The notes under the pieces: generated by a model
What the model saw: the letters and a program-made list of their open reading frames with translations, nothing else
Told to the model about the DNA's origin: nothing
Database searches by the model: none
Sequence record: MG592671.1
Length of the DNA stretch: 64,000 nt
Direction: 5' to 3' (one strand)
Shown: in pieces, positions 2,399-56,563 of the stretch
Position numbering within the stretch: position 1 is the first letter of the stretch
How the letters are laid out: each line of letters starts with the position of its first letter
Made by a program: the position numbers and the translations under genes

Positions 2399-2965
2399 AT
2401 GAAAACCGCTATACTTTTTTTCGGACGAACTCAACCGTGTGTTCACAAAGGTCACGAAATGATCTTCGACAAAATGCGTAACGAGTGGCTAAAAGATCCG
2501 CAGAACTCTTCGTATTTCATCTATCTTACTATGACTGTAAATAGAAATTCCCCGATTCCTTATAAAACTAAGTTAGATATCTCTAAGCAGTTAGTTCCGC
2601 TTCATGCTTCTCGATTTGTCGATGAGCATCCAGGCAACCTTATCTCTGTATTAAAGGACTTGCAAGAAAATTATACTGATATAAAAATTTATACAGGATC
2701 TGATCGTTCTCTTGGATTAAGCTATGTGTACGATTATAACGGGAAAGAGTATAATTTTAATTCTATAGAAGTTGTGAATGCAGGTGAACGTAATATATGG
2801 TCTACAGGTGTAGACGGCATAAGCGGTACTAAACTCCGCGAGTGTATACGAAATAAAGATTTAGATGGTTTTATTGATGGTATTCCTAGAACCCCTAAAG
2901 AGAAGGCATCTGAAGTATTCAATACTCTATCAAATGAAATGAATGTTGTGTCAAAGGCTAGTTAA
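2399..2965 (+). CDS. HxGH-class cytidylyltransferase-like nucleotidyltransferase
   Basis: FGRTQPCVHKGH, GSDR and ISGTKLR motifs typical of phage cytidylyltransferases. Confidence 0.75.
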   Translation: MKTAILFFGRTQPCVHKGHEMIFDKMRNEWLKDPQNSSYFIYLTMTVNRNSPIPYKTKLDISKQLVPLHASRFVDEHPGNLISVLKDLQENYTDIKIYTGSDRSLGLSYVYDYNGKEYNFNSIEVVNAGERNIWSTGVDGISGTKLRECIRNKDLDGFIDGIPRTPKEKASEVFNTLSNEMNVVSKAS

Positions 2966-4134
2966 TGATATCAGATAAAGATTTAGACATCAAAGTAAAA
3001 CGTAATTTTTGTAATTATAGTGGTCATTTAGAAGAAGAATATGAGTACTATGATAGTGTTGATGACCATGGCAAGCATGTTGAGGTTAAGCATGGATACT
3101 ACCACATGTACAGCTCAGATTGTCCCACATTTATACAGAATGACTATATCTACAGACATAACAAACTCCACGGCCACCAAAAAGAATATGAATGGGATTT
3201 CGAAAATCGCTTAGAAGCTGAAGGTGAATTTGACAATGGGGTTAAAGTAGGAGTTCATAAAAGCTACAATTACGTTCGACTTAATAATTTCAACGATGAC
3301 AAAGTCTTTGTTGAAATTAGAATGTGTGCATATGTTAATGGCAAGTTGCACGGAGTTTCTCAGGAGCAACTAGAAGATGGTACTGTTATTAGCGAAGCTA
3401 TCTACAATAACGGCGTTTTAGAGTCTATGTGGGAAAAGGACAGTTCCTCTGGTTATAAATTACTTGATAAAGCTTTTTGTAAACTTGGTAATAAAAAATT
3501 AGGAGCATCGTGGGATAGAGGCGAGCTTACTGCTAAGTGGGAAGCTACGATGGGATGCGACGATTTACATAACGAAGTGTACATTACCAAATATGAAGAT
3601 TACGAGACTGGGCCAGGTGGTAAGAATTTTTTAAGAACGTATGTTGAGTTTGATGAGAACAGCAACGCAACAACTGCCAAGACTTTTTACTCTTCTGGGG
3701 CAATCAACGAAGTATACACTGTGGTTAATAATCCATTTAGAAAGTTGCAAACTTCCCCTACAAATGCAATACACTACCATACTTCACCAGAAAACAGCCC
3801 AGGAGCGCCTTGGTTTGGTAACATCCCATATCTACCAGATGAATTTCGTCGTCAAGGCCTACAGCGAGTCGAGTATTACGAAAATGGAAATGTTAAGATG
3901 GCTAACATGATAGATGGTAGAAAGTTTCTAGGAGAATTTCGCTTTTACGATGCACTTGGTAATCTTGTTGAGCATGCATATTATCATCAAGGACAAGATG
4001 TTACTAATGATGTTCTTGAGATCGCAGAATGTGATACACTTGATGACATTAGTGAGGAAGCTGAGGTTTTTCTAACACTCCAATATGGTGCGTTACTCTT
4101 AACTCCTAAGGAGTTATTATGTCCTCTGAAGTAA
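2965..4134 (+). CDS. MORN-variant/YwqK-like repeat protein
   Basis: Repeats such as EGEFDNGVKVG, YVNGKLHG, YYENGNVK. Confidence 0.6.
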   Translation: MISDKDLDIKVKRNFCNYSGHLEEEYEYYDSVDDHGKHVEVKHGYYHMYSSDCPTFIQNDYIYRHNKLHGHQKEYEWDFENRLEAEGEFDNGVKVGVHKSYNYVRLNNFNDDKVFVEIRMCAYVNGKLHGVSQEQLEDGTVISEAIYNNGVLESMWEKDSSSGYKLLDKAFCKLGNKKLGASWDRGELTAKWEATMGCDDLHNEVYITKYEDYETGPGGKNFLRTYVEFDENSNATTAKTFYSSGAINEVYTVVNNPFRKLQTSPTNAIHYHTSPENSPGAPWFGNIPYLPDEFRRQGLQRVEYYENGNVKMANMIDGRKFLGEFRFYDALGNLVEHAYYHQGQDVTNDVLEIAECDTLDDISEEAEVFLTLQYGALLLTPKELLCPLK

Positions 4135-4463
4135 AAGTTAGATTCACAGTACATCCACTTTTCGAGATGTATGAAGAAGATTACAATATTAGACAAGTAT
4201 CGGTGAAGATTGACAGCGATCGTATTGCTGTCATTAATTGCCAAAAAACAAAAGATAAATGGGGCGAGCCTAAATTTGTTATACTAAAAGGACAACTTAC
4301 CTATAGAGAAATGACTGGCTTAGGGTTCGCAATGCAACGCGCCCAAAAGATTATGATGTCTATAGGTCAACTTGTAGTAAGTACAGCTGACTTAGAGCTT
4401 TTAATAGAGAAGGCTGACGGGGAGACTCACGGACCATGCCATGCCCTATCCAACGACGAATAA
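4119..4463 (+). CDS. hypothetical protein
   Basis: ORF coupled to its neighbours. Confidence 0.7.
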   Translation: MSSEVKVRFTVHPLFEMYEEDYNIRQVSVKIDSDRIAVINCQKTKDKWGEPKFVILKGQLTYREMTGLGFAMQRAQKIMMSIGQLVVSTADLELLIEKADGETHGPCHALSNDE

Positions 4464-4723
4464 TGAATATTCTTCAAACACAGCATGAAATATGTGTGGA
4501 AGTAAAACACATTACTAAACGATATACTATGAAACACTCATACCGTAGTGTTGACTCGTTGAATATTCCTAGTGAGTGGATAAAAGTTATATACTTGATC
4601 AGCAGTACTGAGTTGTCAGAATACACTGAAGAGCAAATCATAAACGCAGTAAATCTACTGTCAGAAAAATCAAATGTATCTTTACATGTAGACGGTAAGC
4701 GTCTACGTTATAAGAAGGACTAG
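4463..4723 (+). CDS. hypothetical protein
   Basis: TAATG overlap places the start at 4463. Confidence 0.65.
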   Translation: MNILQTQHEICVEVKHITKRYTMKHSYRSVDSLNIPSEWIKVIYLISSTELSEYTEEQIINAVNLLSEKSNVSLHVDGKRLRYKKD

Positions 4724-4727
4724 CTAT

Positions 4728-5048
4728 ATGTACAAAACATTACCGTATACGTCAGTTTATGACGTGATGATTGAATGGAAAGCAGCAGTTATTATCAAGC
4801 AGAACTTTGCTCTTAAAAACAACTCCAGAGATGATTGCGATCGTGATTTGATTATCCCTGAAGTTATAGAGACTCGCGTTGTTCCAGGTAAAAACAAAAC
4901 AAGAACCATCAGACGAAAGGCTGAAACTTTAGATGATTTATTTGTCGCGCATTCTCAAAAATTATCGCAACCGTATTCTACAACTGTAGACATTATTGAA
5001 AGAGATCTACGAGATGTAGTGCGAACAATGACACTAGGTTACGATTAA
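4728..5048 (+). CDS. hypothetical protein (C-terminal tag family)
   Basis: ORF; ends RDVVRTMTLGYD. Confidence 0.65.
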   Translation: MYKTLPYTSVYDVMIEWKAAVIIKQNFALKNNSRDDCDRDLIIPEVIETRVVPGKNKTRTIRRKAETLDDLFVAHSQKLSQPYSTTVDIIERDLRDVVRTMTLGYD

Positions 5049-5078
5049 TGTAATTGTATCTATAATATGTGTTATAAC
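5049..5078 (+). promoter_or_regulatory. Phage promoter (variant)
   Basis: TGTAATT-N14-TGTTATAAC. Confidence 0.55.
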
Positions 5079-5113
5079 AATGTACAACATAACAAAACGT
5101 AAGGAGCTTGCGT

Positions 5114-5377
5114 ATGTCCAAAATTATCAAGGCTGAAGAGGCCACTCGAGCTATATTGAAGTTCTCAGGTCAGTACGGCCTAAAATCTGTAACTCTAACA
5201 ACCACTCTAGCGCAACGTTGCCAAAGTGTAGGTACTCTTACTTTGTATGCTGAGTCAGATGACGCGTATCCTGTTGTTTTGGAAGATGTGCGTTACCCAA
5301 ATGTTGTTGTTCGAAGTGTAGCACAAATGCTCCGTATCAATTTTTATTTGCGATACGATCATACCGAAATGGCGTAG
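5114..5377 (+). CDS. hypothetical protein
   Basis: SD AAGGAG at 5101. Confidence 0.7.
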   Translation: MSKIIKAEEATRAILKFSGQYGLKSVTLTTTLAQRCQSVGTLTLYAESDDAYPVVLEDVRYPNVVVRSVAQMLRINFYLRYDHTEMA

Positions 5378-5441
5378 CACGCCATTCTATGGCCTAGAAC
5401 CACCGGGCCTCCATTAACTAAGGACAATAAGGATTACCAGG

Positions 5442-5996
5442 ATGGTTTATTTGTGTTATATTTCTAAAGGAATGTCGGTAAAAGAAGTTTCGGAAATGCT
5501 TGGATATGATAAGCATAACCCTATAAAGCAAGAAATATACCAGCAACTAATAGATGGTGCTAAGTTTAAAAAGTGGGATACAGAAGCTCGATCAAAAAAA
5601 GGCGCGAAAGGCAGTATGCGTTTTGTAAAACTCATTGATATCAATTCTGATGATGTTGAATCTTGGCTTTTCACTCTAGGACTTGAGGATTCTACATTCT
5701 TCCCTTTAGGAGTTATAGACGTTACTGGTGAAGAACTAGTTAATGAACGTGATGACGAACTAAGCAACATCCATTGGAGTATTCAACCTGAACTGAGTAA
5801 AATGGTTGTTGAGTATTATACAAAGTATCCTAAGACAGAAATTGTGTATCGTGGAGGCTGGAATCGTGATATTGACTACAGTCTTAGAAACAGGTTGTCC
5901 GCACATTACAATACTCGCTATAGAGAAGAAGAAACAAAAATCAAGAAAAAGTATGCCAACACAATCACCCAATATATGAAAAAATTTGACCTATGA
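5442..5996 (+). CDS. hypothetical protein
   Basis: 184-aa ORF coupled to the next gene. Confidence 0.7.
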   Translation: MVYLCYISKGMSVKEVSEMLGYDKHNPIKQEIYQQLIDGAKFKKWDTEARSKKGAKGSMRFVKLIDINSDDVESWLFTLGLEDSTFFPLGVIDVTGEELVNERDDELSNIHWSIQPELSKMVVEYYTKYPKTEIVYRGGWNRDIDYSLRNRLSAHYNTRYREEETKIKKKYANTITQYMKKFDL

Positions 5997-6442
5997 AAAA
6001 ATATCTACATTGGTGCATCAGCACATCCAGCAAAATGTATAAGAAATACGGAACTAAGTATATTCTAATACTCACTGGTTCAATCACTGGCCTAAACGTT
6101 ATTATCGGGGCTTTATTTTTGTATTTGTTTGAGCACAATGTAGACAATGCGCTAATCAACTCATATAGTTCAGCTTTATGGATGAACTGGATGGTAGCTA
6201 CAACTGTAGGTTTTGGGGATTACTATCCTATATCTACAGGAGGTAAAATAGTTACTGGTATCTCAAGTGCAATTGGCATAGGAATGTTTGGGTTATTCAC
6301 TTCTGTAGTATCAGGTATTCTAATGGAACATACTGATGATAGTATTAGAAACAGAGAACTAAAAGAACAAAATGCTAGAATTGAAATTGAACTTAACGAG
6401 GTCAAGAAGATCCTAGTAAGCTTTACCAAAGATAAAAAATAA
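5993..6442 (+). CDS. Two-TM potassium channel (KcsA/Ion_trans_2-like)
   Basis: TM1, pore helix ALWMNWMVA, filter TTVGFGDYYP, TM2 GIGMFGL, C-terminal coiled coil. Confidence 0.9.
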   Translation: MKKYLHWCISTSSKMYKKYGTKYILILTGSITGLNVIIGALFLYLFEHNVDNALINSYSSALWMNWMVATTVGFGDYYPISTGGKIVTGISSAIGIGMFGLFTSVVSGILMEHTDDSIRNRELKEQNARIEIELNEVKKILVSFTKDKK

Positions 6443-6457
6443 GGTTAATGCGTTAAA

Positions 6458-6793
6458 ATGAGCAATTTTGAAAAGTTTTATCCTGCATTATATAACTGGT
6501 GTTCTCGTCACCCCTCACATATGTTAAGTTCTAATTGTGCATTTAAAAATCTAATGACTAAGGATTTAGGCGATTTGCCTGGATTTGCAGATTGTGGGAT
6601 TAGAACTGTGTACGCTAGAGCAGCCCAAGATCCATTTGCAATCAAATATACCTATCATATAGGAGATGTCAACTCACGTAAGAGTATTAACGTGGTGATA
6701 TCTATGGGAATTGAGTTCCATAGACGTGATGGCAGCACAGCCGCAGCGATTGCAAATGATTTAACATACCAAAATCTTAGGAAGTATACTTAA
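6458..6793 (+). CDS. hypothetical protein
   Basis: ORF coupled to rnlA. Confidence 0.7.
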   Translation: MSNFEKFYPALYNWCSRHPSHMLSSNCAFKNLMTKDLGDLPGFADCGIRTVYARAAQDPFAIKYTYHIGDVNSRKSINVVISMGIEFHRRDGSTAAAIANDLTYQNLRKYT

Positions 6794-7959
6794 TGAAATA
6801 TCAAGAATTATCCACTCGTCAAGAGGAAATCTTTTCTAATCTAACAACTATTTGTAAGGATAGTGACGCATTCTACTTCCAAGATTTCCCAGCAAATGAA
6901 GACGAAGACACAGTGTACCGAATCTTCAATTACCGACAAGCATCATATACTGACTTTTGTATGCCAGATGCGCATGAATGTCGAGGAATTACCTTTGAAG
7001 TATCAATGTATGGTAACCCTATACGTTTAGTATCGATGCCAATGCAGAAATTCTACAATCATTCAGAAACCCCGTTTGCAATGGTACATGATATTTTTGA
7101 TACAGATCCACTACTTCATGTGTCTGAGACTGACGTGAAGGCCGACGGATCTCTGATCAGCTCAGCAATCCACGTAGATGGCATGCTAGTGTTGAAATCC
7201 AAAGGGTCATTTGCCTCAGTCCAAGCAACTGAATCCTTAAAATGGCTCGAGCATCGACCTGAGATATACAACGAGGTGATGCAACTAACCCAAAATGGAT
7301 ATACAGTAAATTTTGAATGGTGTTCACCAGATAATCGTATCATTTTACCATACGCTGAGCCCCATCTTAAAGTGTTAAACATTCGTAATAATTTTACTGG
7401 TGAGTACGAGTCTCGACGTGACATCGGGGTACATTCTCCAGTACTTAAATCTCACATGATTGAACTTGTGTCTCTTCCAGGTAATACTTGGGACGAAATG
7501 ATTGAAACAGTTCGAAAAGAAACTGGTATTGAAGGGTACATTGTCAAGTTTGATAATGGGTTATGGGTTAAAATTAAAACTGACACATACAAAACGTTGC
7601 ATCACTCGAAAGACTCTGTTAATATTCCGCGCCGTTTATTTGAAGCGTGTGTGATGGATGCCACTGATGACCTAAAGGATATGTTTGGGACTGACGAAGT
7701 GGCTATGAAGCTAATTACTGATATGGAAGATTTTGTTCGTCCTATTTATAATGGCATCTGTAATGATGTTGAAACTTTTTATAATGATAACAAAGAGCGC
7801 TCACAGAAAGAATACGCTATTGCTGCACAGGCAGTCTTAGGCAAAGAACTGAACAAGTTTGGCCTAGCTATGTCATTGTACAACGGCAAAGAGATTGACT
7901 ACAAAAGCAATTTGAAGAAGTACTGGAAATCTCTTGGTCTTAAAGATGAGAAAATCTAA
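6793..7959 (+). CDS. rnlA: RNA ligase 1 (T4 RnlA-like)
   Basis: ECRGITF, motif I KADGSLI, EGYIV, VKIK. Confidence 0.9.
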   Translation: MKYQELSTRQEEIFSNLTTICKDSDAFYFQDFPANEDEDTVYRIFNYRQASYTDFCMPDAHECRGITFEVSMYGNPIRLVSMPMQKFYNHSETPFAMVHDIFDTDPLLHVSETDVKADGSLISSAIHVDGMLVLKSKGSFASVQATESLKWLEHRPEIYNEVMQLTQNGYTVNFEWCSPDNRIILPYAEPHLKVLNIRNNFTGEYESRRDIGVHSPVLKSHMIELVSLPGNTWDEMIETVRKETGIEGYIVKFDNGLWVKIKTDTYKTLHHSKDSVNIPRRLFEACVMDATDDLKDMFGTDEVAMKLITDMEDFVRPIYNGICNDVETFYNDNKERSQKEYAIAAQAVLGKELNKFGLAMSLYNGKEIDYKSNLKKYWKSLGLKDEKI

Positions 7960-8231
7960 TGCTACAGAACTTTGCCTCTAATATTGAGAAGCCAACGTCG
8001 GCAATGCGAACAGCATATCTCTACGCTTTGAGTATTGGGGCGTTTGATTCTGATAAAGTTTCATATTATGATTTTGAAAGTAGTTCCTTAGATGATAGTC
8101 CCTCGACAGAAATACATAATTCTGTTTTCGAAGCGCTGCATGTTCTTTGGAAAGAAGGTTTTATTATCATAGATAGTGAGGGACCTTTTGAAATGGTACG
8201 CTGGAACAGCGAGGATTATCCTATTGCTTGA
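7959..8231 (+). CDS. hypothetical protein (paralogue of next gene)
   Basis: Shares IGAFD/MGAFD and W-SE/W-SD with 8224-8490. Confidence 0.7.
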   Translation: MLQNFASNIEKPTSAMRTAYLYALSIGAFDSDKVSYYDFESSSLDDSPSTEIHNSVFEALHVLWKEGFIIIDSEGPFEMVRWNSEDYPIA

Positions 8232-8490
8232 AGACTTTGCTAGATCTATCCAACGTTGGACTGATTGCGAAATTGCAGCATACCAACTAGGCATCCATAT
8301 GGGTGCCTTTGATCAAGAAGATGTGCCGTTAAATGACTTTTACGAAGGTGATTTTGATGATGAGTATCTTCATGATCTAAAAATATCACTACTTAGAGCT
8401 CTTAACGCATTAGAGCACGAACGCTATATCGTATATTACATTGGAGAAAGCATGTGGAAATGGCGAAGCGATTTATATCCGTTGGACTAA
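8224..8490 (+). CDS. hypothetical protein (paralogue of previous gene)
   Basis: TTG start chosen by alignment with the upstream paralogue. Confidence 0.6.
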   Translation: MLEDFARSIQRWTDCEIAAYQLGIHMGAFDQEDVPLNDFYEGDFDDEYLHDLKISLLRALNALEHERYIVYYIGESMWKWRSDLYPLD

Positions 8491-8708
8491 TAGCTCTAGC
8501 ATTGGTCGGGTGTGGTAAAACTGAAATAGCTGAAGAAAAGTTTACTAAAGTTGAACTTGAATCAAATGATATGGTATTCACTGAGTTCTCACGATCTATG
8601 TCAGTGCTGCAGATAACTGCAAATGGAATGCCGTGTATAGTTTATAACCACATGTCAAACAAGGCAGGCATCACTTGTGATTGGACGAAATATAACCCCG
8701 GCCCATAG
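8460..8708 (+). CDS. Lipoprotein
   Basis: Signal peptide with lipobox LVGC. Confidence 0.65.
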   Translation: MAKRFISVGLIALALVGCGKTEIAEEKFTKVELESNDMVFTEFSRSMSVLQITANGMPCIVYNHMSNKAGITCDWTKYNPGP

Positions 8709-8964
8709 AGGCGTATACATCTACGAAGAAGTAGATGATAAAACTGTGATTATCGAGCTTAAAAACCAATTTTACCGAGGTGATTTATTTGACTGGCTTA
8801 ACAGTATAGAATGTTTCGCGCAAACCATACGTGATTATGAACAGCCAATAATGCATGAGAAAGAAGATAGAGACAAACTTGGTATTTGGAAAAGGTTTAG
8901 AGTAACCGAACTCATTGAAATTAAGGGATATGACGTAGTTACTTTAGTTATGTTAGGACTGTAG
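8677..8964 (+). CDS. hypothetical protein (C-terminal tag family)
   Basis: Ends YDVVTLVMLGL; start uncertain. Confidence 0.6.
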   Translation: MIGRNITPAHRGVYIYEEVDDKTVIIELKNQFYRGDLFDWLNSIECFAQTIRDYEQPIMHEKEDRDKLGIWKRFRVTELIEIKGYDVVTLVMLGL

Positions 8965-9013
8965 CAGAGACCTAAAAAATACACAATAGCAACATATTTT
9001 ATTGGCGGATATC

Positions 9014-9406
9014 ATGAAGAAAAAAGCTTCTGTTTGTTTGATACAAAATAGCGAAGGCGCAGTGCTACTATTGAAGCGGTCGCCTAATGATCGATCATAT
9101 CCTAACACTTGGTGCTTACCTGGAGGTAAGCTTGACGAAGGGGAAGACTTTGAAGACGCGTGTATCAGAGAAACACACGAGGAAACTGGACTAATAGTCA
9201 ACCCATGGGAGCGGAGTATTTCATATGAAATACCAGGTTTCGAAGTACGAATTTTTGATGCATTAGAGGTTGACGGTGAAATAATTAACTTCCCTACTAA
9301 CGAACACTCAGAGTATAAGTGGGTTCCTAAATCGGAACTTTCTCAGTACGAGGTTCCTCAAATGACTACCACATACCTTAAATGGAGATTAGGTCCTTAT
9401 GACTAA
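9014..9406 (+). CDS. Nudix hydrolase (MutT-like)
   Basis: Nudix box GGKLDEGEDFEDACIRETHEETG. Confidence 0.9.
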   Translation: MKKKASVCLIQNSEGAVLLLKRSPNDRSYPNTWCLPGGKLDEGEDFEDACIRETHEETGLIVNPWERSISYEIPGFEVRIFDALEVDGEIINFPTNEHSEYKWVPKSELSQYEVPQMTTTYLKWRLGPYD

Positions 9407-9959
9407 AAACAAAGAACGTTTTGAATTATTGAAAGAACGCAACATCATCCTTACTGGCAACGTTGCAGAAGCAAACTGTGCAGAACTGGTGCAAAAAATC
9501 ATTGACATCAATCTTAAAGACGATGTAATGGAAGAAATGGAAGTCGGATACGTTCGCGAACCAATCAAACTAACAATTGATTCGTACGGTGGTTGCTGTT
9601 ATAGTGGTAATGGTCTTATTGGTACAATCCTTACATCAAAGACTCCAGTGTGGACTTACTGTCATTCTAAAGCCATGAGTATGGGACAATTGACTTTCAT
9701 CGCAGGAGAGCGACGTTTTATTGGACCACAAGCAACTATTATGTTTCATGGTGTTGCAACAGGTGCCACTGGATACCTCCCAGCAGTTGAAACTAAATTG
9801 GAAGAAGGTCGTCGTTTAGAAGAAAAAGGTACAAAACTAACAGTGGCTCGCACTAAGGTATCTCGTGATAAACTAGAGGGTGTTATCAAAGAGAAGACGG
9901 AATGGTTTTTTGATGCCGAACAAGCAATTGAGTACGGCTTTGCTACGGATCTCCTATAA
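9399..9959 (+). CDS. clpP: ClpP-like protease
   Basis: IDSYGG, AMSMG catalytic Ser, IMFH. Confidence 0.85.
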   Translation: MTKNKERFELLKERNIILTGNVAEANCAELVQKIIDINLKDDVMEEMEVGYVREPIKLTIDSYGGCCYSGNGLIGTILTSKTPVWTYCHSKAMSMGQLTFIAGERRFIGPQATIMFHGVATGATGYLPAVETKLEEGRRLEEKGTKLTVARTKVSRDKLEGVIKEKTEWFFDAEQAIEYGFATDLL

Positions 9960-10228
9960 TGTCAGAATTTACTATCCAGGAAACCCAAAAAGCAGTAGTT
10001 CGTTCGATGACGCCAGAACTAAAAACTCGGCCCAGCTCGATGATGGAAGGATACACTATCTTTGAGTTTAGAGCAGGATCTCATTGGACAGTCTCGCGTG
10101 TCCATGCAATCATTGAAGAATTTGAAATTGAGTTTCTTGAATTAGAGTGTAAACTAAACGTGTTTAGCTTCCAAACAAAACAAGGTGATGAGTTACTAGC
10201 CCACTTTACATTATTAGGATTGTTATGA
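9959..10228 (+). CDS. hypothetical protein (C-terminal tag family)
   Basis: Ends DELLAHFTLLGLL. Confidence 0.7.
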   Translation: MSEFTIQETQKAVVRSMTPELKTRPSSMMEGYTIFEFRAGSHWTVSRVHAIIEEFEIEFLELECKLNVFSFQTKQGDELLAHFTLLGLL

Positions 10229-10458
10229 ACAAATTAGATACTATTCGTGTGGCACCAAGTATTTTTCCTAATCACTCAGTGGTTATGGTACCTCCTTACA
10301 AGAAAGGTGAGTTCGAGGAATTTGTAGAAATGGCTGGTATAGACGCCACACTGCTTTCTGGTCCTAAACGTCAAGGTTCTATATACCAACAACATGTGTA
10401 TTGTTATCGAGTGCATGACGTTCACCACGTTACAATATCTTTAGAATACGGTATTTAA
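10225..10458 (+). CDS. hypothetical protein (C-terminal tag family)
   Basis: Ends HHVTISLEYGI. Confidence 0.7.
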   Translation: MNKLDTIRVAPSIFPNHSVVMVPPYKKGEFEEFVEMAGIDATLLSGPKRQGSIYQQHVYCYRVHDVHHVTISLEYGI

Positions 10459-10461
10459 TTC

Positions 10462-10508
10462 TGTTACAACTCCTGCGTTGTGTGTTATAATAATACAGCA
10501 GAGGAGTT
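10462..10508 (+). promoter_or_regulatory. Phage promoter with SD-occluding inverted repeat
   Basis: TGTTACA-N14-TGTTATAAT; AACTCCT (10468) pairs with AGGAGTT (10502). Confidence 0.75.
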
Positions 10509-10513
10509 TAGCT

Positions 10514-10963
10514 ATGAAGAAAATTTTAATCCCGTTTATATTAGCGTTTTCAGGTTCAGTATTTGCCCACCCAGTAAACGACATTGTGTCAGCTTCTAAT
10601 GATTTGGATAATAATATGCCAAAGATTGAGACGTGTTACGAAGTGATCAAAACTGAACCTTCTTTGGTTTCCACATCTACAGAATGTGACTACGTCGCAG
10701 AAAGCGGTGCGCGTATACTAGAAATCCTAGTTGCTTCTCTAGAAGAAGAAGGAATTGAAGTTACTAAAGAAAATAGACGTGAGCTATTAGGAATTGCTTG
10801 GGGTGAATTAAATCTATTCGAATTCATTGACGTATCAACTACTGCTCTTAAAGAAAGTGTTGAAGAGACAAGTAAGTACGTCGCTAAAAATCATCCTGAG
10901 ATGGTTATGAAGTATCTAACAAAGGATACCATACAAAAACTTGAGCAAGGAGGCATCATTTGA
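10514..10963 (+). CDS. Exported hypothetical protein
   Basis: Signal peptide MKKILIPFILAFSGSVFA; SD GAGGAG. Confidence 0.75.
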   Translation: MKKILIPFILAFSGSVFAHPVNDIVSASNDLDNNMPKIETCYEVIKTEPSLVSTSTECDYVAESGARILEILVASLEEEGIEVTKENRRELLGIAWGELNLFEFIDVSTTALKESVEETSKYVAKNHPEMVMKYLTKDTIQKLEQGGII

Positions 10964-11178
10964 TGTCTTTTAAGCATTAAAAACTCTAGCCTATAAAGAG
11001 TTACTAACTTCTACTTTTGTATTGTTGATAACAACGTGGTATTGAGTTCAGACGCTGATGAGATATGATTAACGTTCGTGATTTTATAAAGAATATCTCC
11101 TAACTAAACTACCTGATGGCATACCATTACAGTTAGACAAGCTACTTATATTACCTTATCATTGGAGTTGGCAGTTGA
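10963..11178 (+). pseudogene. Decayed ORF
   Basis: Broken frames; one fragment reads QATYITLSLEL, resembling the C-terminal tag. Confidence 0.3.
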
Positions 11179-11375
11179 TCACAAATGGAATGAAAACTTT
11201 CGTAGAAGGTGATGATACAATAGTATATGCTAGTTCAGAATACTTTATTGAAGAGCTTGAAATTTATGCATTGCGTCTTCAAATTAGCTATGATATACAA
11301 TATTGTAATTCAGGATGGACTATTAAAATGTCACATGAAGATTTTAAACAATTTAAACTACGGTTTGATTTATGA
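11175..11375 (+). CDS. hypothetical protein
   Basis: Ends EDFKQFKLRFDL. Confidence 0.6.
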   Translation: MITNGMKTFVEGDDTIVYASSEYFIEELEIYALRLQISYDIQYCNSGWTIKMSHEDFKQFKLRFDL

Positions 11376-11611
11376 ATGGTGTACCAGTAAGTATTTACAG
11401 ACACCAAGATCCAGATAAAATGGTTCTTGTTCTGGATGGCTTTTATTATATGCCAGAAATTCAAAAAGCACTTGCTGACTTTTGTCCAGGACACAAGCTT
11501 ATAGAAGCCAGTCTTTGGCACAAGTCAGTTGAAATAAACAAAGAGCATTTAGATGGGCTTCGAGTTCATCTAGCATTAGTGAATATCGCCTCAAAGGAGA
11601 TCACAGAGTGA
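11372..11611 (+). CDS. hypothetical protein
   Basis: ATGA coupling to its neighbours. Confidence 0.65.
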   Translation: MNGVPVSIYRHQDPDKMVLVLDGFYYMPEIQKALADFCPGHKLIEASLWHKSVEINKEHLDGLRVHLALVNIASKEITE

Positions 11612-12552
11612 AAACTTTATTTTTGCCAATCGGCATGCAGGCATCCGGAAAAACAACCTGGGCTAAAGAGCTTTGTAAGCACATGAACCGTAAAGGTTCG
11701 CAAAATCGTTTAGCATTGATCTCTCGTGATGAATATCGTGATATGCTTGCCGGTGGTATCGAGAACTACACGTTCGGTAATAAGTTCAGCACTGAAGTTG
11801 AATCAATGATTACTGATGCTGCGGTTCATCAAGCTGAATTAGCTGTTGCTAAAAACTTGAACATCGTTATTGCTGACATGAACTTAAACCCAGCAACTCA
11901 ACGTTCTTGGGAAAAGTTCGCTAAGAAGAACAACATGAAAGTTGAGAAGAAAGACTTTTATGCTGAGTGGCTAGCAACTGAAGGTTCTAAATTTGACCTA
12001 CTTGTTGCTGAAGATAAGTATCTTGAACTTATGATCGAGCGTGACTTGAAGCGTCCTAACTCACTTGGTCATGAAGTTCTTACTAATACCTTCAATAAGT
12101 ATCTTCGATCTGAGCTTATCCAACACGAGCATATCCCAGGTCTACCTTCAGCAGTTATCTTTGATGTAGATGGTACACTGGCAGAAATGAATGGTCGTAT
12201 GCCATACCAATGGAAACGTGTTGGTGAAGATACAGTTCGTGAAAATGTTGCTCGTGTACTTCGAATGCACCACGCAGCTGGTGATAAAATTATCATCCTT
12301 AGCGGTCGTGATGGATCATGCCAACCAGAAACTGAGAAGTGGTTGAAAGATAATAATCTACACTATGATCATATCTGGATGCGAGCTCCAAAAGATCAAC
12401 GCAAAGATTCAATTATCAAAAATGAACTTATCGATGATCATGTAAACGGAGTATTTAATGTTCATTGCGTTTACGACGATAGAGATCAGGTAGTTCTAGT
12501 ACATCGTCGTAAAGGATTAGACTGTTTTCAAGTAGCACCTGGCGCATTCTAA
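11608..12552 (+). CDS. pseT: Polynucleotide 5'-kinase/3'-phosphatase (T4 PseT-like)
   Basis: Walker A GMQASGKTT; HAD motifs FDVDGTL and YDDR. Confidence 0.92.
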   Translation: MKTLFLPIGMQASGKTTWAKELCKHMNRKGSQNRLALISRDEYRDMLAGGIENYTFGNKFSTEVESMITDAAVHQAELAVAKNLNIVIADMNLNPATQRSWEKFAKKNNMKVEKKDFYAEWLATEGSKFDLLVAEDKYLELMIERDLKRPNSLGHEVLTNTFNKYLRSELIQHEHIPGLPSAVIFDVDGTLAEMNGRMPYQWKRVGEDTVRENVARVLRMHHAAGDKIIILSGRDGSCQPETEKWLKDNNLHYDHIWMRAPKDQRKDSIIKNELIDDHVNGVFNVHCVYDDRDQVVLVHRRKGLDCFQVAPGAF

Positions 12553-12594
12553 TAAAATGATATAATATCTATGTTAATTTAATATAGAATTATT

Positions 12595-12781
12595 ATGCTA
12601 AAGAAAAATAAATGCTTGTAAATTGTGCGGCGGTACAATTTACAAGCATCAAACATATTGTACTATGGAATGTTTTAAAACATTTATTAACCTGCCTGAT
12701 GAAAATGGCGAATCTCAAGCTAAAATAAAAATAAAAAGAATAGGAAAAGCTACGAGAGAATATCTGTCAAAAACGGATTAA
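12595..12781 (+). pseudogene. Frameshifted remnant of a Zn-finger (HNH-type) endonuclease
   Basis: CKLCG...YCTMEC is out of frame with ATG12595. Confidence 0.45.
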
Positions 12782-12931
12782 CCATAGAACAAATCGAGTT
12801 AACAATTAGAGAGATGGTATAAGGTACAACAAAGATGATTATATCCATTAACTTGATTTGCTTCTTTATAGATTATAGACGCAGCAATAACTCCTAAAAT
12901 TTGTATTATAACATTTAACTAGGTATATGAT

Positions 12932-13216
12932 ATGCTCACGCCACATATGATTGAACATATGTTTGTTGAAACAAAAGGAAAATTTAGCTTCATCTGTTTC
13001 AAGAGAGCTGAAAATACAGTCGAAAAACGTACTGTTAGGCAGTTGTTGAGCTACCTTGGTATATCATTTCACTTTATTCCTGGTAGCTATGTACACGAAA
13101 ATCTTGTGCAGGGAGCAGATTCTGAAATAAGTTCTGATAATATCAAATGTGATTCTTGCTCTTGCTATCAGATAAAAACTGAAGACTTGGCACACCTTGC
13201 ACTAATGGGTTTATAA
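12932..13216 (+). CDS. hypothetical protein (C-terminal tag family)
   Basis: Ends EDLAHLALMGL. Confidence 0.7.
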   Translation: MLTPHMIEHMFVETKGKFSFICFKRAENTVEKRTVRQLLSYLGISFHFIPGSYVHENLVQGADSEISSDNIKCDSCSCYQIKTEDLAHLALMGL

Positions 13217-13443
13217 TGACAGAAAAAGAATTAGTGGTTCTTATTAAACATCTTATGGAAAGAGAACCACATTTCCCTTATTCCCATATCTCTGCTGGTG
13301 TTCCGTTAACACTTAATGCATGTCTGACATTTGCTATTGAGTATTGGCAAGACATTCCTACAAGGGGTGTCTTTGAAAAGCACACAATCTATGGAACATT
13401 TGCTATGTGGCTTAGAGATCGTGACTGGGGGAAAAACTTATGA
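13216..13443 (+). CDS. MTE-family small protein
   Basis: MTEKE start and central YWQDI. Confidence 0.7.
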   Translation: MTEKELVVLIKHLMEREPHFPYSHISAGVPLTLNACLTFAIEYWQDIPTRGVFEKHTIYGTFAMWLRDRDWGKNL

Positions 13444-13715
13444 GTTTAGATCTACAAGGATCTATTAGTTGGATTACTGGCAACGACCCTTACCATTATC
13501 ATGATGAAGATGAGTTCTGTTCTAGACTAAAACAACAAATCAGATACACTAGTCGTATTTCACAAGATGAATTCTACGGTAAAGATTATGTGATCAAAGA
13601 ATATAATAATCTATTCCACTTTGCAGAATACGGTTGTTATTTTTGGGAATCGTGGAACGGTTATAGTATGGATATCTTCTGGCGCCCAGTAAAGCTGGAT
13701 CCTCTGTTTAGCTAG
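13440..13715 (+). CDS. hypothetical protein
   Basis: ATGA coupling. Confidence 0.7.
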   Translation: MSLDLQGSISWITGNDPYHYHDEDEFCSRLKQQIRYTSRISQDEFYGKDYVIKEYNNLFHFAEYGCYFWESWNGYSMDIFWRPVKLDPLFS

Positions 13716-13720
13716 GCAGT

Positions 13721-13750
13721 AGCAATACTACCTTATTAACGTGTTATAAT
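13721..13750 (+). promoter_or_regulatory. Phage promoter driving the MTE array
   Basis: GCAATA-N14-TGTTATAAT (core at 13742). Confidence 0.7.
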
Positions 13751-13761
13751 AAAGTATAATT

Positions 13762-13977
13762 ATGTCAAATGAAGATCTTCTTTTAGAGAATTTAAATCTC
13801 TGTTTTGCGATTATTGAGACTAATATTGTAACTATTAGTGGTCCTATTATTGGAGTTGGTTCTCTTATAGATAAAGATTTGGCAGAGAAATCACTTTCTA
13901 TGGTGTATATAATACTTACTCGTATTCTCGATGGAGAATGCCACGGTATGAAATGGGAAGAGTTTGCTTATGACTGA
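13762..13977 (+). CDS. First small ORF of the tandem array
   Basis: Its stop lies inside ATGACTGA. Confidence 0.65.
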   Translation: MSNEDLLLENLNLCFAIIETNIVTISGPIIGVGSLIDKDLAEKSLSMVYIILTRILDGECHGMKWEEFAYD

Positions 13978-14245
13978 CGAAGAAACACTTGAATTATTAA
14001 AATTTTTTATATATAAACTTAAAACAGGCAACCTCACAACAAAAATCAACATCAATGAGCGCTTAACATTTATATTGGGAGGGGGAGAAATCCAAGTTCC
14101 TTCTACTGATACTGCCTTCGATCAAAGTATTATTGCTCGATGGTGTAGAGCTTACAATACAGAAATCCATCGTGTTGAATATAAACCTCATAGATGTGAA
14201 TTACATCCAGTAGTTAAGCAAAAACGTACGGACTGGCAGCAATGA
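13970..14245 (+). CDS. MTE-family small protein
   Basis: MTDEE. Confidence 0.7.
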   Translation: MTDEETLELLKFFIYKLKTGNLTTKININERLTFILGGGEIQVPSTDTAFDQSIIARWCRAYNTEIHRVEYKPHRCELHPVVKQKRTDWQQ

Positions 14246-14439
14246 CGGAAGATCAAATATATAATACTATTAAACATTTAGTAGAAGATCTAAGGATTAA
14301 CTCCAACAATAAAAGTATTGTATGGCAGATCAATTTATCGTTCATAGCAATAATGGAACAATCATCTAATATTGTCATTAATGAATGGTATTATGTTATT
14401 GATTATGCTCTGAAGCATAGGATGTCGTTGCATGACTGA
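14242..14439 (+). CDS. MTE-family small protein
   Basis: MTEDQ. Confidence 0.7.
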   Translation: MTEDQIYNTIKHLVEDLRINSNNKSIVWQINLSFIAIMEQSSNIVINEWYYVIDYALKHRMSLHD

Positions 14440-14641
14440 AGAACAACTTCAAACAATTGTTTCGTCCCTTTCTTGTGATTTAGAACAATGGCATAGCTAC
14501 ACAAGACTAGGGTATCAAATAGAACTCCAAACTGTTATGATTTATTGGAACGATATCCTTATTGACCGAGGATATTTGTGGCCTGATTTCCGTCAATGGA
14601 TGGCTAACAACAAACATAAATGGGTTAGATTTGATGACTGA
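14432..14641 (+). CDS. MTE-family small protein
   Basis: MTEEQ, IYWNDI. Confidence 0.7.
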   Translation: MTEEQLQTIVSSLSCDLEQWHSYTRLGYQIELQTVMIYWNDILIDRGYLWPDFRQWMANNKHKWVRFDD

Positions 14642-14867
14642 AAAACAACTATACATTTTAATAAAATATATAAGTTCCAGAGCTAGTTATAACTCCATAG
14701 TAACTACTAGTTTCTGGGGCCAGACATTGTTTATTCTTTCTCAACACTGGCAAGATATCAACTTAGGACTAGGTGATATAGGGGAAAAGTTAGAATCTCC
14801 TGATAATCTAATAGTCCTATATAAGGCATGGGCTGCTACTAAATGTCCCTCAGGATATTACCTATGA
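14634..14867 (+). CDS. MTE-family small protein
   Basis: MTEKQ, QHWQDI; start moved to ATG14634. Confidence 0.7.
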   Translation: MTEKQLYILIKYISSRASYNSIVTTSFWGQTLFILSQHWQDINLGLGDIGEKLESPDNLIVLYKAWAATKCPSGYYL

Positions 14868-15049
14868 CTGAAAAACAATTCTTAATAGCTTTCACTGGCT
14901 CATTTCACTTAGTTGAGATGGGCAATTGGAGTGCTTGGTTTATAACTCAACTGTGTGAAAATTGGCATGCAGATATGGATTTGGATCCATCCGAAACTTT
15001 GTACTCTACAATTGTAGATGCTTTTTGTTATAGTGGGTATATGTCATGA
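14864..15049 (+). CDS. MTE-family small protein
   Basis: MTEKQ, ENWHAD. Confidence 0.7.
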   Translation: MTEKQFLIAFTGSFHLVEMGNWSAWFITQLCENWHADMDLDPSETLYSTIVDAFCYSGYMS

Positions 15050-15246
15050 CTGAGGATTTGGTAGCAAGATTAGTTATCATGTTAAGTGATGAACTTAAAC
15101 CAAGCACTATTACAACTCATCGTGAAGATCTCAATCGTCAACTAATCGCAGTTTTAATATTTTGGCCTGAGATGAAATGCCTGACTATAAGTCAAGCATT
15201 AGGTGATATTCGTAAATGGGTAGATAAGGTGTTATGTCATGACTGA
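15046..15246 (+). CDS. MTE-family small protein
   Basis: MTEDL, IFWPEM. Confidence 0.7.
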   Translation: MTEDLVARLVIMLSDELKPSTITTHREDLNRQLIAVLIFWPEMKCLTISQALGDIRKWVDKVLCHD

Positions 15247-15436
15247 AGATATAGCTACTGAGATTTGTATGAGGCTAACTAGAGATCTCAGTAGATTTCG
15301 ACATCGTCCTAGATGGGTGAAAACTTGTGCTTGGTACTTACAGACTCTTATAGAGACGTGGCCTGAAAGTAAGGCAACTACCATTATTGAATTTCTTGAT
15401 GAGCATATAGAACCTGATGGTGAACGTGATGTCTGA
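15239..15436 (+). CDS. MTE-family small protein
   Basis: MTEDI, ETWPES. Confidence 0.7.
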   Translation: MTEDIATEICMRLTRDLSRFRHRPRWVKTCAWYLQTLIETWPESKATTIIEFLDEHIEPDGERDV

Positions 15437-15641
15437 AGAACAGTTTTATAACGTAGCTCACTTTTATATCGACCTGCATGATTATCTTCAAAATTACCCA
15501 GAACGTCCATACCCTGTGATGCTTGCAACATTATGCAAACACTGGAAAGATATCATTATTGTTGAAGACTGGATGGTCATTGAGGAATTCAAAGACTGGG
15601 TTGATGATAACGAAGATAAAATAGTGGTATTCCATGACTGA
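15429..15641 (+). CDS. MTE-family small protein
   Basis: MSEEQ, KHWKDI. Confidence 0.7.
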   Translation: MSEEQFYNVAHFYIDLHDYLQNYPERPYPVMLATLCKHWKDIIIVEDWMVIEEFKDWVDDNEDKIVVFHD

Positions 15642-15837
15642 AGATAATGCTAATGATATTTTAGTTGAGCTTGTTAAGACACTTGAAAAAGACATAACCA
15701 ATACGAATACTATTACAATAAATCGTTTGTTCTACTTCACTCAAAATTGGCCATCAATAAAGACGATCGATGTATTCCATTATTGTATGTATCATAGTGG
15801 TATATATTATAAAGAGGAGCAACTCATCAATGACTGA
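15634..15837 (+). CDS. MTE-family small protein
   Basis: MTEDN, QNWPSI. Confidence 0.7.
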   Translation: MTEDNANDILVELVKTLEKDITNTNTITINRLFYFTQNWPSIKTIDVFHYCMYHSGIYYKEEQLIND

Positions 15838-16042
15838 AGATCAATTTGTTGGTATTTTAGACCTTCTTTTGTGGTCGTATCAGTTTGGAGAAACTGCTGA
15901 TTCTAGAGATGATAAAGCTTATTCTCTTAATAGAATATATTATCTAGCTGAAAACTGGCATTCATTAGATAGAATGACCTGTGCTGAATACATGACTTGG
16001 TACAGCCAAAATAGTACCCACCTACATAAACTTATTAATTAG
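15830..16042 (+). CDS. MTE-family small protein
   Basis: MTEDQ, ENWHSL. Confidence 0.7.
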   Translation: MTEDQFVGILDLLLWSYQFGETADSRDDKAYSLNRIYYLAENWHSLDRMTCAEYMTWYSQNSTHLHKLIN

Positions 16043-16085
16043 GAACGTCCTGCTCCGCATTAACTACCAAATAAAGAAAATTAAT

Positions 16086-16361
16086 ATGGCAAAAGCTAGA
16101 CCTAATGTGGATGTCTGTCTTGAGCATATATGCACTTACAATAATGAATATCAAACGTGTGGTCGACCTAAATTATCTGATATTTTGTCAGGAAGTCCAA
16201 CAACAACGTCGATGATTACAGAAGATAAGATGGCTATTGTTGCTATGTATCGTTATTTTGGATGTAAAATTTATGGAACTCTGAAGCAAAAGATTAAGAT
16301 CCATTATAATGCTCATGAAGAACTTGATCAAGTAACACTTACACTTGGAGGCTCACTATAA
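16086..16361 (+). CDS. hypothetical protein (C-terminal tag family)
   Basis: Ends EELDQVTLTLGGSL. Confidence 0.7.
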   Translation: MAKARPNVDVCLEHICTYNNEYQTCGRPKLSDILSGSPTTTSMITEDKMAIVAMYRYFGCKIYGTLKQKIKIHYNAHEELDQVTLTLGGSL

Positions 16362-16678
16362 TGGACTTAGAAGAATTTGTTAAATTCGTTCAAATAGCTA
16401 AAGACTTCAATAATGAATATATTGAAGTAAAAGATTCATATAGACGCCAATGCTCTATAAAAGATCTTACTCACAAAATTGATAACTGGACTGCTTCTAG
16501 TATGTTCAAGATTTTAGCCCAGGAAAAGCTAGATAGACTTCTTAAGTATCAGTCTTGTCTAGAATATTTCAAATGCCATACACCAGAAGCGTGTATCCGT
16601 AATGCTGATTATATAATTGCTGATATGTCTGACGAAGACCTTGTTACCCTATCCCTATTAGGAATATTCAATGAGTGA
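16361..16678 (+). CDS. hypothetical protein (C-terminal tag family)
   Basis: Ends DEDLVTLSLLGIFNE. Confidence 0.7.
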   Translation: MDLEEFVKFVQIAKDFNNEYIEVKDSYRRQCSIKDLTHKIDNWTASSMFKILAQEKLDRLLKYQSCLEYFKCHTPEACIRNADYIIADMSDEDLVTLSLLGIFNE

Positions 16679-16865
16679 TTTCTTTCGTTGGGCATACGCC
16701 GTTCTAGCAGTTATTACATATGTTCCTTACGGTTTAATGTGGTACTGCGCTCCAAAAGTTTTTAAACTGCAAAACTTAGATCCATTAGAAGAGTTAGGAT
16801 TTATGATCAGCGCGATCGCAATCACTATTCATAGACTGCTAATAATCACGTATTTTATTATATAA
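16671..16865 (+). CDS. Small membrane protein
   Basis: Two hydrophobic segments. Confidence 0.6.
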   Translation: MSDFFRWAYAVLAVITYVPYGLMWYCAPKVFKLQNLDPLEELGFMISAIAITIHRLLIITYFII

Positions 16866-29191: not shown

Positions 29192-29203
29192 TATTTATAA
29201 ATA
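29192..29203. promoter_or_regulatory. Palindromic bidirectional late promoter
   Basis: TATTTATAAATA is its own reverse complement and gives TATAAATA on both strands. Confidence 0.7.
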
Positions 29204-40700: not shown

Positions 40701-40973
40701 ATGAAACTTGAAACTGATGCAGATTTCGAATACTATAATTATTGCCAAGCAGTATCAACGCTAATAGTCCACCACAAAGATTCTTTAGATTTTGCATCTA
40801 AAAACAGACCAGATACTTCTCTTGAATTAGAATTAGCTCTATCATTAGAACCACACAAGTACACTAAAGAAGAATGGTGGGATGTGCTTAACAATAATAT
40901 TGTTATGTTCGCTTTACTCGATGAGCGCATTAGTAAAATTATCCCAAATTATATCAAATGGGCTAGAGAGTAA
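40701..40973 (+). CDS. hypothetical protein
   Basis: Contains LELELALSLEP. Confidence 0.65.
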   Translation: MKLETDADFEYYNYCQAVSTLIVHHKDSLDFASKNRPDTSLELELALSLEPHKYTKEEWWDVLNNNIVMFALLDERISKIIPNYIKWARE

Positions 40974-41242
40974 TGTCTTCACCACTACACAAACTCCTAA
41001 TAGCTAGAATGTTATTATTTCGACCAAAGTCTATTGGTCGAAATATACAAAGAGCTCACTTAGTTGACTTAGAGCCTTGTGTTGATTTTGTAATGTCGCT
41101 ATTTGATAATGATTACACTACAGAAGATAGAATACAAGAAATAGAAGAAGCTGAGATAACTCTTGCTTTGTTGAATCCACAATTCAGTACAATAATGAAT
41201 GGCGCAATAAAAGATTACAAAGCTGATGGGATTGAGCGATAA
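40973..41242 (+). CDS. hypothetical protein
   Basis: Contains EAEITLALLNP. Confidence 0.65.
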   Translation: MSSPLHKLLIARMLLFRPKSIGRNIQRAHLVDLEPCVDFVMSLFDNDYTTEDRIQEIEEAEITLALLNPQFSTIMNGAIKDYKADGIER

Positions 41243-47223: not shown

Positions 47224-47342
47224 GGGCTCATGGCGAAGCGGGATCGCGATTTAGTTTAGTACCTAGATCTAGGAGTACGCATCCGCAACACTCTTAACCG
47301 GCATGATCGGTGACGTTGGTTCGAATCCAACTGAGTCCACTA
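47224..47342 (+). ncRNA. tRNA-like RNA with G3.U70/A73 and a replaced anticodon arm
   Basis: GGGCTCA/TGAGTCC-A-CTA, D-arm and T-arm present. Confidence 0.65.
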
Positions 47343-56137: not shown

Positions 56138-56563
56138 ATGTCAAAATTAATTACTAACCTAAATAGTGATAACTTCGATTTTGAGGATATCCTGTACTTA
56201 AAAACCCGTTTAAAATTCAAGTTCAAAAATGAACCTGAAGTAAATGTAGACCTTAGTTTCTACCCTCATGATCGAGATTATGGATTCACAAAACGTTTCA
56301 AAAATTCATCCAAATGGGAAGAATATATGAGTATTCTTCGTAAAGCTAAAAACATTCTCAAAGAAGGACTAGTTGAAAATCTAGAACTTGAAACATACTC
56401 AACTGGTTATTACGCTGTTGATTCTGAGCATCGAACAATCTCACGTAAAGGAATGAGCGCAGTGATTAATAGCGAATGGAACGAACGTTATCGTATTGAT
56501 ACGCCAATTGAATCTGCGGAAGAAGTAATTTTGTGGACTAAAATGGTTCTTTTAGGCAAATAA
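56138..56563 (+). CDS. hypothetical protein
   Basis: ORF. Confidence 0.7.
   Translation: MSKLITNLNSDNFDFEDILYLKTRLKFKFKNEPEVNVDLSFYPHDRDYGFTKRFKNSSKWEEYMSILRKAKNILKEGLVENLELETYSTGYYAVDSEHRTISRKGMSAVINSEWNERYRIDTPIESAEEVILWTKMVLLGK

Follow-up and report, generated by a model that had tools for sequence, protein, structure and literature searches.

The question raised by this locus is whether small and otherwise dissimilar phage proteins share a short peptide at their C-termini, and what such a peptide would be for. The stretch analysed (the window, 64,000 nucleotides) corresponds, at 100% identity, to positions 124001-188000 of the record of Vibrio phage 2.275.O._10N.286.54.E11 (MG592671.1; 348,911 bp), a giant marine Vibrio phage of the Rak2-like jumbo type, whose major capsid gene shares 77-79% DNA identity with its counterparts in GAP32, in 121Q-like phages and in further Rak2-like jumbo phages. 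In the original prediction, which named proteins by the start coordinates of their open reading frames (ORFs) in the window, a usage kept here, unrelated proteins were said to end in a common acidic-TLxLxG tail, read as a portable helix for capsid packaging or ejection, for docking to a common partner, or as a degron for the phage ClpP paralogues. The element is a 13-residue peptide, h-[SPN]-[DE]-[DE]-x-x-V-T-[LIYW]-x-L-[LM]-G, found near the C-termini of some twenty small phage proteins and, in one subgroup of carriers, terminating as VTYELL-stop. It is a real, clade-specific C-terminal element conserved at the peptide level, and it may be a portable docking or address tag for a common putative partner, which is the reading tentatively preferred here.

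The whole genome was rebuilt, with 484 genes called using a codon-usage filter against 489 annotated coding sequences (CDS). The genome-wide search of C-termini proposed with the prediction recovered the motif and found it enriched over shuffled tails. The de novo run, with zero or one occurrence per sequence (ZOOPS), took the final 20 residues of 406 proteins, with each BLAST paralogue group represented by a single member, and returned the consensus SDEELVTLELL. In this run the fully fitted likelihood over-fits and does not discriminate, whereas the unfitted seed-stage score does: it reached 45.7 for the C-termini, while 12 shuffles yielded 21.3-27.9 and segments taken from N-terminal, middle and sub-terminal parts yielded 19.4-23.3. 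A position matrix of 12 columns was built from 16 instances and applied with leave-one-out scoring, a C-terminal hit being a score of at least 12 bits ending 0-8 residues before the stop. Such hits were found in 17 proteins genome-wide when the matrix was used without leave-one-out, against a mean of 0.10 and a maximum of 1 in 200 shuffles of the tails, so that the shared tag is not only real but stronger than first seen. Under leave-one-out, 13 hits of at least 12 bits fell in the C-terminal zone and 8 elsewhere, a 33-fold excess in rate per position. An origin by chance or composition is ruled out by the shuffles and the positional controls.

Over 26 copies, sequence conservation is limited to the 13 columns L-[SPN]-[DE]-E-x-x-V-T-[LIY]-x-L-[LM]-G, the strongest being L (25/26), T (20/26) and V (18/26); at the third position E occurs 14 times and D 8 times, and the 24 columns upstream carry roughly 0-0.7 bit each. 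The endings of the carrier tails are mixed, with GL, GLL and ELL in some and IFNE, INE, GWE and YEPYIRK in others. Every C-terminus quoted in the prediction was found as written. The scores uphold the 16361, 12932, 2965 and 16086 proteins as carriers and the 9959 protein weakly, leave 8677 with a half-motif only, and make 10225 and 4728 doubtful; among the proteins cited for similar segments, 11372 (weak) and 40973 (non-terminal) hold, and 11175, 40701 and 58078 fail. The copies in the window are as follows, with leave-one-out scores unless stated:

4048..4089, + strand: motif ISEEAEVFLTLQYG, followed by 14 residues, in CDS 2965..4134 (389 aa, MORN-repeat); 11.3 bits, p=0.01.
5004..5042, + strand: doubtful member DLRDVVRTMTLGY-D-stop, in CDS 4728..5048 (106 aa); 1.2 bits, p=0.11.
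8920..8958, + strand: half-motif DVVTLVMLG-L-stop, with the VTLxMLG core present and the acidic half absent, in CDS 8677..8964 (95 aa); 2.0 bits.
10181..10219, + strand: motif QGDELLAHFTLLG-LL-stop, in CDS 9959..10228 (89 aa); 6.3 bits, p=0.05.
10411..10452, + strand: doubtful variant VHDVHHVTISLEYG-I-stop, in CDS 10225..10458 (77 aa); -2.0 bits.
11546..11584, + strand: weak variant HLDGLRVHLALV, in CDS 11372..11611 (79 aa), the scored 12-mer ending 9 residues before the stop; 9.9 bits, p=0.009.
13172..13210, + strand: motif IKTEDLAHLALMG-L-stop, in CDS 12932..13216 (94 aa); 15.1 bits, p=0.0005.
16314..16352, + strand: motif HEELDQVTLTLGG-SL-stop, in CDS 16086..16361 (91 aa); 11.2 bits, p=0.001.
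16625..16663, + strand: motif MSDEDLVTLSLLG-IFNE-stop, in CDS 16361..16678 (105 aa); 22.7 bits, p=0.0005.
41138..41176, + strand: internal copy EIEEAEITLALL, 21-22 residues before the stop, in CDS 40973..41242 (89 aa); 13.8 bits in the whole-protein scan.
56513..56557, + strand: doubtful member SAEEVILWTKMVLLG-K-stop, in CDS 56138..56563 (141 aa); 1.7 bits; absent from the earlier list and surfaced in the de novo run.

The segment is conserved as a peptide. Over 25 instances, the information at codon positions 1, 2 and 3 amounts to 0.79, 0.92 and 0.16 bits. At identical residues with four- or six-fold codons, third positions show an identity of 0.36, inside the range of 0.30-0.39 predicted from codon usage. 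The opposite explanation, in which the motif is a by-product of signals that serve the following gene, namely its promoter, Shine-Dalgarno (SD) sequence or start codon, or of AT-rich chance, draws on the final glycine, whose codon (GGA/GGAGG) also belongs, in 8 of the 15 Gly-containing carriers, to the SD of an overlapping gene downstream; thus a GGA Gly codon of the 9959 gene lies within the SD of the overlapping following gene, and in the 16086 gene the GGAGG encoding G-G is the SD of the gene that follows. Glycine is in fact enriched genome-wide at the ends of tightly coupled genes, because SD sequences of the GGA/GGAG type are read as Gly codons: its frequency in the last six residues is 0.103 in genes with the next start within 12 nt against 0.060, the proteome value being 0.063. 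However, six carriers have no downstream start within 19 nt, and the 8677 gene has none within 37 nt, which means that its Gly did not arise from an SD; the V-T-L-x-L core precedes the SD; phage 121Q, with equal gene packing and 34% GC, gives 0 hits in 378 ORFs; and 17 proteins are observed where shuffles lead one to expect 0.1. Since the conservation sits in the peptide and third codon positions are free, the motif is not an SD or DNA signal; as a whole the by-product explanation is scarcely conceivable, and it is refuted for the core motif, being a partial explanation of the final Gly only.

Outside the window the carriers include NVP2275O_039 (LSDDERVTLALMGY-stop), 073, the tandem genes 192-195 (with tails such as LPDEDQVTLTLLGASL-stop), and genes 447, 448 and 450-453, which sit just past the capsid gene and four of which end VT[YW]ELL-stop. 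BLASTP and phmmer link carriers to one another within tandem clusters only. Genes 192-195 are paralogues with 22-26% identity, in which the motif is the best-conserved part (4/12 invariant columns); genes 447, 451, 452 and 453 have a common N-terminal NPF...EN..LY signature, and in the family 447-453 the motif holds the sole invariant columns besides the start Met. When the two families were compared with hhalign, only the last 26 columns aligned, and an alignment of five window carriers revealed no common core beyond the tail. The MORN-repeat proteins form another kind. NVP2275O_371 is a true MORN_2 protein (PF07661, 52.8 bits for a gathering cut-off of 29.6), and the 2965 protein, at 19.9 bits against the same cut-off, has VNGKLHG-type repeats in common with it (BLASTP 1e-4); similar repeats are visible by eye, without a Pfam call, in proteins 072, 073 and 395. 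MORN_2 repeats occur in two carriers only and most carriers lack them, the others being helix-predicted proteins, small alpha/beta-predicted proteins and ORFans. Pfam and PHROGs searches with 20 carriers gave only MORN_2, plus two function-unknown PHROGs on the 2965 protein. Carriers are small (18 of 21 have 70-120 aa, against 30% of all genes; P = 2e-7), and their charge and hydropathy are unremarkable. They are also clustered, with 10 adjacent carrier pairs against 0.87 expected. The claim that the parts upstream of the tail are unrelated therefore stands for the several architectures and for singletons without similarity outside the motif, but not for the tandem paralogues, and the adjacency counts against it as well. 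Portability, by contrast, is borne out by a tail placed on MORN-repeat proteins, on two distinct paralogue families and on singletons. Besides these terminal copies, at least 10 good internal ones lie 12-102 residues before the stop (among them those in 067, 198, 124, 036, 303 and 40973), and protein 073 has a second copy that is internal.

The tail is also kept in other phages. An exhaustive phmmer search with the 2965 protein returned the orthologues P0003 (35% identity), P0004 (27%) and P0005 (27%), the overall identity range of the MORN orthologues being given as 27-36%, together with P0024, a 122-aa MORN protein; all keep the tail, as ISEESMVFLTINYG, LTSDDLVFFVLQYG, ITEDDIVYLTLLYG and TDEEQMLIKLKYGMK-stop. 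V368, Y374 and G375 of the 2965 tail are invariant in P0003-P0005, and the best-conserved stretch of the orthologue alignment is its last 45 columns; in these orthologues the motif belongs to a conserved module at the C-terminus, some 35 residues long. General bacterial MORN_2 (PF07661) proteins among the search hits lack the motif, although two of its carriers in phage 2.275.O are MORN-repeat proteins. The orthologues lie on contigs that are syntenic with the window. Relatives of the window region are limited to short metagenomic contigs: L054 (ENA RIIS20-1 scaffold_280), L052 (Logan SRR29257532) and L053 (TARA scaffold_41063). L054 (12.1 kb) carries orthologues of eleven window genes and, in addition, two tail-bearing ORFs to which nothing in phage 2.275.O is homologous: one of 96 aa, ending LSDEDKVTLVLLGWKSQ-stop (28.6 bits), and one of 78 aa, ending MMTLELCV-stop. 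Portability thus extends across phages, and this conservation constitutes the strongest evidence for a portable tail kept by selection in a small clade. Given the L054 carriers and the MORN orthologues, the spread of the tail does not appear to be merely a matter of recent duplication.

Other searches were negative. No C-terminal hit of at least 8 bits was found among 378 ORFs from the first 197 kb of phage 121Q (only 4 weak ones lie elsewhere). The 929 ORFs examined from further related viral and metagenomic loci gave none either, at the 10-bit listing threshold for 828 ORFs from 26 IMG/VR loci and at 8 bits for 101 ORFs of three metagenomic loci that carry a related PNKP/HAD gene. The 16361 protein has no homologue among 5.8 billion proteins in a word-indexed search, and word-indexed searches with the C-terminal part of the 2965 protein and with the P0024 tail returned the queries only; a tblastn search of phages with the 2965 tail yielded nothing but that tail. 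ClpP1 used as an anchor in IMG/VR found no relatives, and a back-translated motif scan of IMG/VR gave 37 singletons with no contig clustering and no enrichment at ORF ends; several of these pattern hits, such as ELHVTLAFLG, are presumably 2H phosphoesterases.

Selection keeps the tail on small, mostly non-late proteins of fast turnover and on MORN-repeat proteins. From this distribution we infer a common docking or address role, in which a partner common to all carriers, by way of a hydrophobic groove or an edge strand, would receive the acidic cap and the amphipathic V-T-L-x-L-L stretch, and the variable N-terminal bodies would do different jobs. The main rival is that the motif is a relic of common descent with no common partner: the last structural element, such as a terminal strand or a capped helix required for folding, of one lineage-specific superfamily that expands in tandem and has otherwise diverged past recognition. 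This is possible though on balance doubtful. The clustering of carriers in tandem and their small size agree with it, as do the true paralogy within the families 192-195 and 447-453 and the existence of internal copies; the ESM Atlas models of the 9959 and 12932 proteins, moreover, are both ACT-like over their full length. It would be expected, however, that folding preserve other core elements too, when only 13 columns survive; the same tail is borne both by helix-predicted proteins and by MORN-repeat proteins, the latter of 196-389 aa; L054 has it on proteins without homologue in phage 2.275.O; and the fold matches are weak (predicted local distance difference test, pLDDT, 0.61-0.67; template-modelling score, TM, 0.58-0.67; about 90 aa).

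The preferred docking-tag reading must also be set against several observations that weigh against it. Because carriers are adjacent so much more often than expected, their sharing of the tail may largely reflect common descent. The motif Gly is followed by a variable number of residues, from 0 to 8, and some tails are polar-ended; a strict C-terminal degron would, in addition, have no need of internal copies, which argues against that form of the reading. In two carriers the ESM Atlas models place the segment inside the fold, at low confidence. Two further points concern the Clp system, considered next as a partner: 121Q has ClpA and ClpS, and other Rak2-like phages have ClpP, yet 121Q is motif-free, which weakens the Clp lead; and L054 lacks ClpP1 and its two coupled carriers at the syntenic position.

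As a lead only, the ClpA/ClpP/ClpS machinery specified by the phage itself would be a candidate partner. Its genes comprise two for ClpP (PF00574), one for ClpS (PF02617) and one for a ClpA-type ATPase, in which Clp_N is joined by two AAA modules and an IGV loop replaces the IGL docking loop of E. coli; with these components present, a Clp degron or docking role is possible. The loci of the Clp set are:

Window 9399-9959: ClpP1.
Window 23785-24486: Clp-set locus.
Window 30975-31601: Clp-set locus.
L006:36105-38321, minus strand: Clp-set locus.
L002:32577-32933: Clp-set locus.

The 9959 and 10225 genes, both among the carriers first listed, are translationally coupled to ClpP1 (9399..9959). ClpA and ClpP2 have 47-48% identity across Rak2-like phages, and 121Q also has ClpS; ClpP1 has diverged far more, scoring 70 bits to PF00574 against 144. 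A third ClpP/crotonase-like ORF goes unrecognised by Pfam, and in L054 the ClpP1 block is missing between the RNA ligase and the PNKP/HAD gene. The layout of the tail, acidic and then apolar, resembles that of ssrA-type tags, and the apolar tags read by ClpXP or ClpAP, with SspB or ClpS as adaptor, are likewise C-terminal with a polar or acidic part before an apolar end. Unlike them, the tail in phage 2.275.O is not always at the extreme end, has internal copies and is unrelated in sequence to AANDENYALAA, and relatives with the same Clp genes lack the motif. Under the Clp lead, the tail would be a tag for timed degradation or an F-box-like adaptor handle that delivers bound targets. More speculatively, and with rather low probability, in a small clade of marine Rak2-like jumbo phages the tag may plug changing small effectors and MORN scaffolds into one hub, possibly ClpA/ClpP/ClpS; it would then act as a timer clearing early proteins, or as an F-box-like handle sending host targets to destruction. 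We know of no programmable virus-encoded targeting system of such kind described in bacteriophages.

The description of the tail as a helix is not established. The hydrophobic moment of the core peaks at 0.31 at 150-160 degrees, which is strand-like, against 0.20 at 100 degrees, and Chou-Fasman propensities are mixed, favouring helix at positions 1-5 and, slightly, strand at 6-11. Structure models are of low confidence: single-sequence AlphaFold2 predictions gave an all-helical 16361 protein with a helical tail (pLDDT 47.6) and a 9959 protein with a coil tail (pLDDT 50.6), both too poor for the tail to be placed. The ESM Atlas model of the 16361 protein is helical; for the 9959 (pLDDT 0.67) and 12932 (0.61) proteins the nearest folds are ACT-like alpha/beta ones, matched at TM 0.58-0.67 over the whole length of proteins of about 90 residues, which is a hint and not proof.

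It had further been suggested that the tail directs capsid packaging. In this explanation the motif would be a targeting signal for capsid or internal proteins, a C-terminal counterpart of the T4 capsid-targeting sequence (CTS), possibly removed by the prohead protease. The T4 CTS is a label of about 10 residues on the unrelated, fast-evolving IPI, IPII, IPIII and Alt proteins, whose genes lie in variable clusters, and the likeness is that of a short peptide which dissimilar small proteins of a T4-related phage have in common. The head module of phage 2.275.O is T4-like and includes a prohead protease, genes 447-453 follow the major capsid gene directly (no terminator was found in between), and the start of the motif, h-x-[DE], loosely resembles the L/I-x-E cleavage site of T4. 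The T4 CTS, however, is N-terminal, has a strict L/I-x-E end and is borne by late, virion-packaged proteins, unlike the tail of phage 2.275.O, which is C-terminal, with D about as often as E at the would-be P1 residue and carriers mostly outside the late-promoter regions. The T4-type late promoter TATAAATA has 17 of its 24 copies in the whole genome in intergenic positions, where 2.7 would be expected, and structural genes follow it at a distance of 12-54 nt (an example, on both strands, is window 29192-29203), but no copy lies in the 72 kb of record 81065-153192, home of most carriers, among them the window carriers and genes 192-195. Neither does GAP32 have such a cluster after its capsid gene, nor 121Q the motif. 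Both the promoter map and the mixture of D and E where cleavage would occur speak against capsid targeting, and this explanation is improbable. A sliding-clamp-binding tail, considered for the C-terminal position and the T-h-x-L-L pattern, is more improbable still. T/Q-L-x-L-L resembles the bacterial QLxLxL motif as well as the tails of T4 gp33 and gp43, the phage encodes a clamp loader (phrog_168), and in known clamp systems (T4 gp43, gp33 and gp55; E. coli Pol IV, QLVLGL) several proteins likewise reach one hub through a short C-terminal tail, hydrophobic in character. Unlike in those systems, the polymerase of phage 2.275.O does not have the motif: this T4-type DNA polymerase (phrog_262; record 325611-328610, L007:40611-43610) ends NNTDLFDW-stop, and a second large protein, NVP2275O_468 (596 aa, no PHROG match; record 330216-332006, L007:45216-47006), ends NNNDLFGW-stop. 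This second, distinct shared tail, DLFxW, is the better candidate and is probably the sliding-clamp-binding motif of the phage.

Expression data bear on the carriers as well. The 2019 RNA-seq libraries contained 71-91% of the sampled words of window 8600-16700, with contigs 100% identical to the window, which is compatible with transcription of the carriers, DNA carry-over being an alternative. In the RNA libraries X6 and X7, which have the least phage signal, a sharp depth peak at 10494-10664 lies directly 3' of a sigma-70-like promoter (10463-10491, extended -10), and is probably an immediate-early transcript for NVP2275O_227. Genome scans for sigma-70 promoters and for terminators stayed at chance level. 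The distribution of TATAAATA constitutes a usable map of late genes.

Some other resemblances were considered and rejected. The H-x-T-x strand of 2H (LigT-like) phosphoesterases, 'HVTLAFLG', has an identical h-T-h-x-h-h-G spacing, but these enzymes are bilobed, of about 180 aa, with two H-x-T/S-x motifs, whereas the carriers, of 77-116 aa, have one terminal copy per protein and His at the catalytic position in 3 of 26 copies only. A sigma-70 region 4 or helix-turn-helix (HTH) element (L-P-x-x-x-R-x-V-x-x-L-x-x-x-G) was discarded, as the stop follows 0-8 residues past the Gly and there were no Pfam HTH or sigma hits. The PRANC/F-box-like module of poxvirus ankyrin proteins is alike in logic only, joining a variable repeat or binding domain (for the tail, MORN repeats or small domains) to a short conserved C-terminal docking element with an L-P-x-E start; the resemblance to F-box helix 1 fails on the defining features, with 13 residues against a three-helix F-box of 40-50 residues, and bacteria have no Skp1/SCF.

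The interest of the docking-tag reading is that jumbo phages hold hundreds of small ORFan genes without a handle for their study, and a selected terminal peptide supplies one: the tail groups some 20-25 ORFans into one functional set and predicts a single partner. If it proves to control packaging, localisation or turnover, it would be a transplantable tag; if the partner is the phage Clp machinery, it would give the first indication of the targets of phage-encoded ClpA/ClpP/ClpS; and if it is a structural relic only, it would be the sole surviving mark of a large lineage-specific gene expansion.

Two features unrelated to the tail were recorded. At window 47224-47339 Rfam reports a tRNA (37.8 bits, full model) with 62 nt in the anticodon arm against 17 in the model; ARAGORN makes no call here and GenBank gives tRNA-OTHER with anticodon TTA, so that it may be an intron-containing or suppressor-like tRNA. 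In a gene-poor stretch at record 93922-93974, GenBank annotates a noncoding RNA named 'CRISPR spacer 1'.

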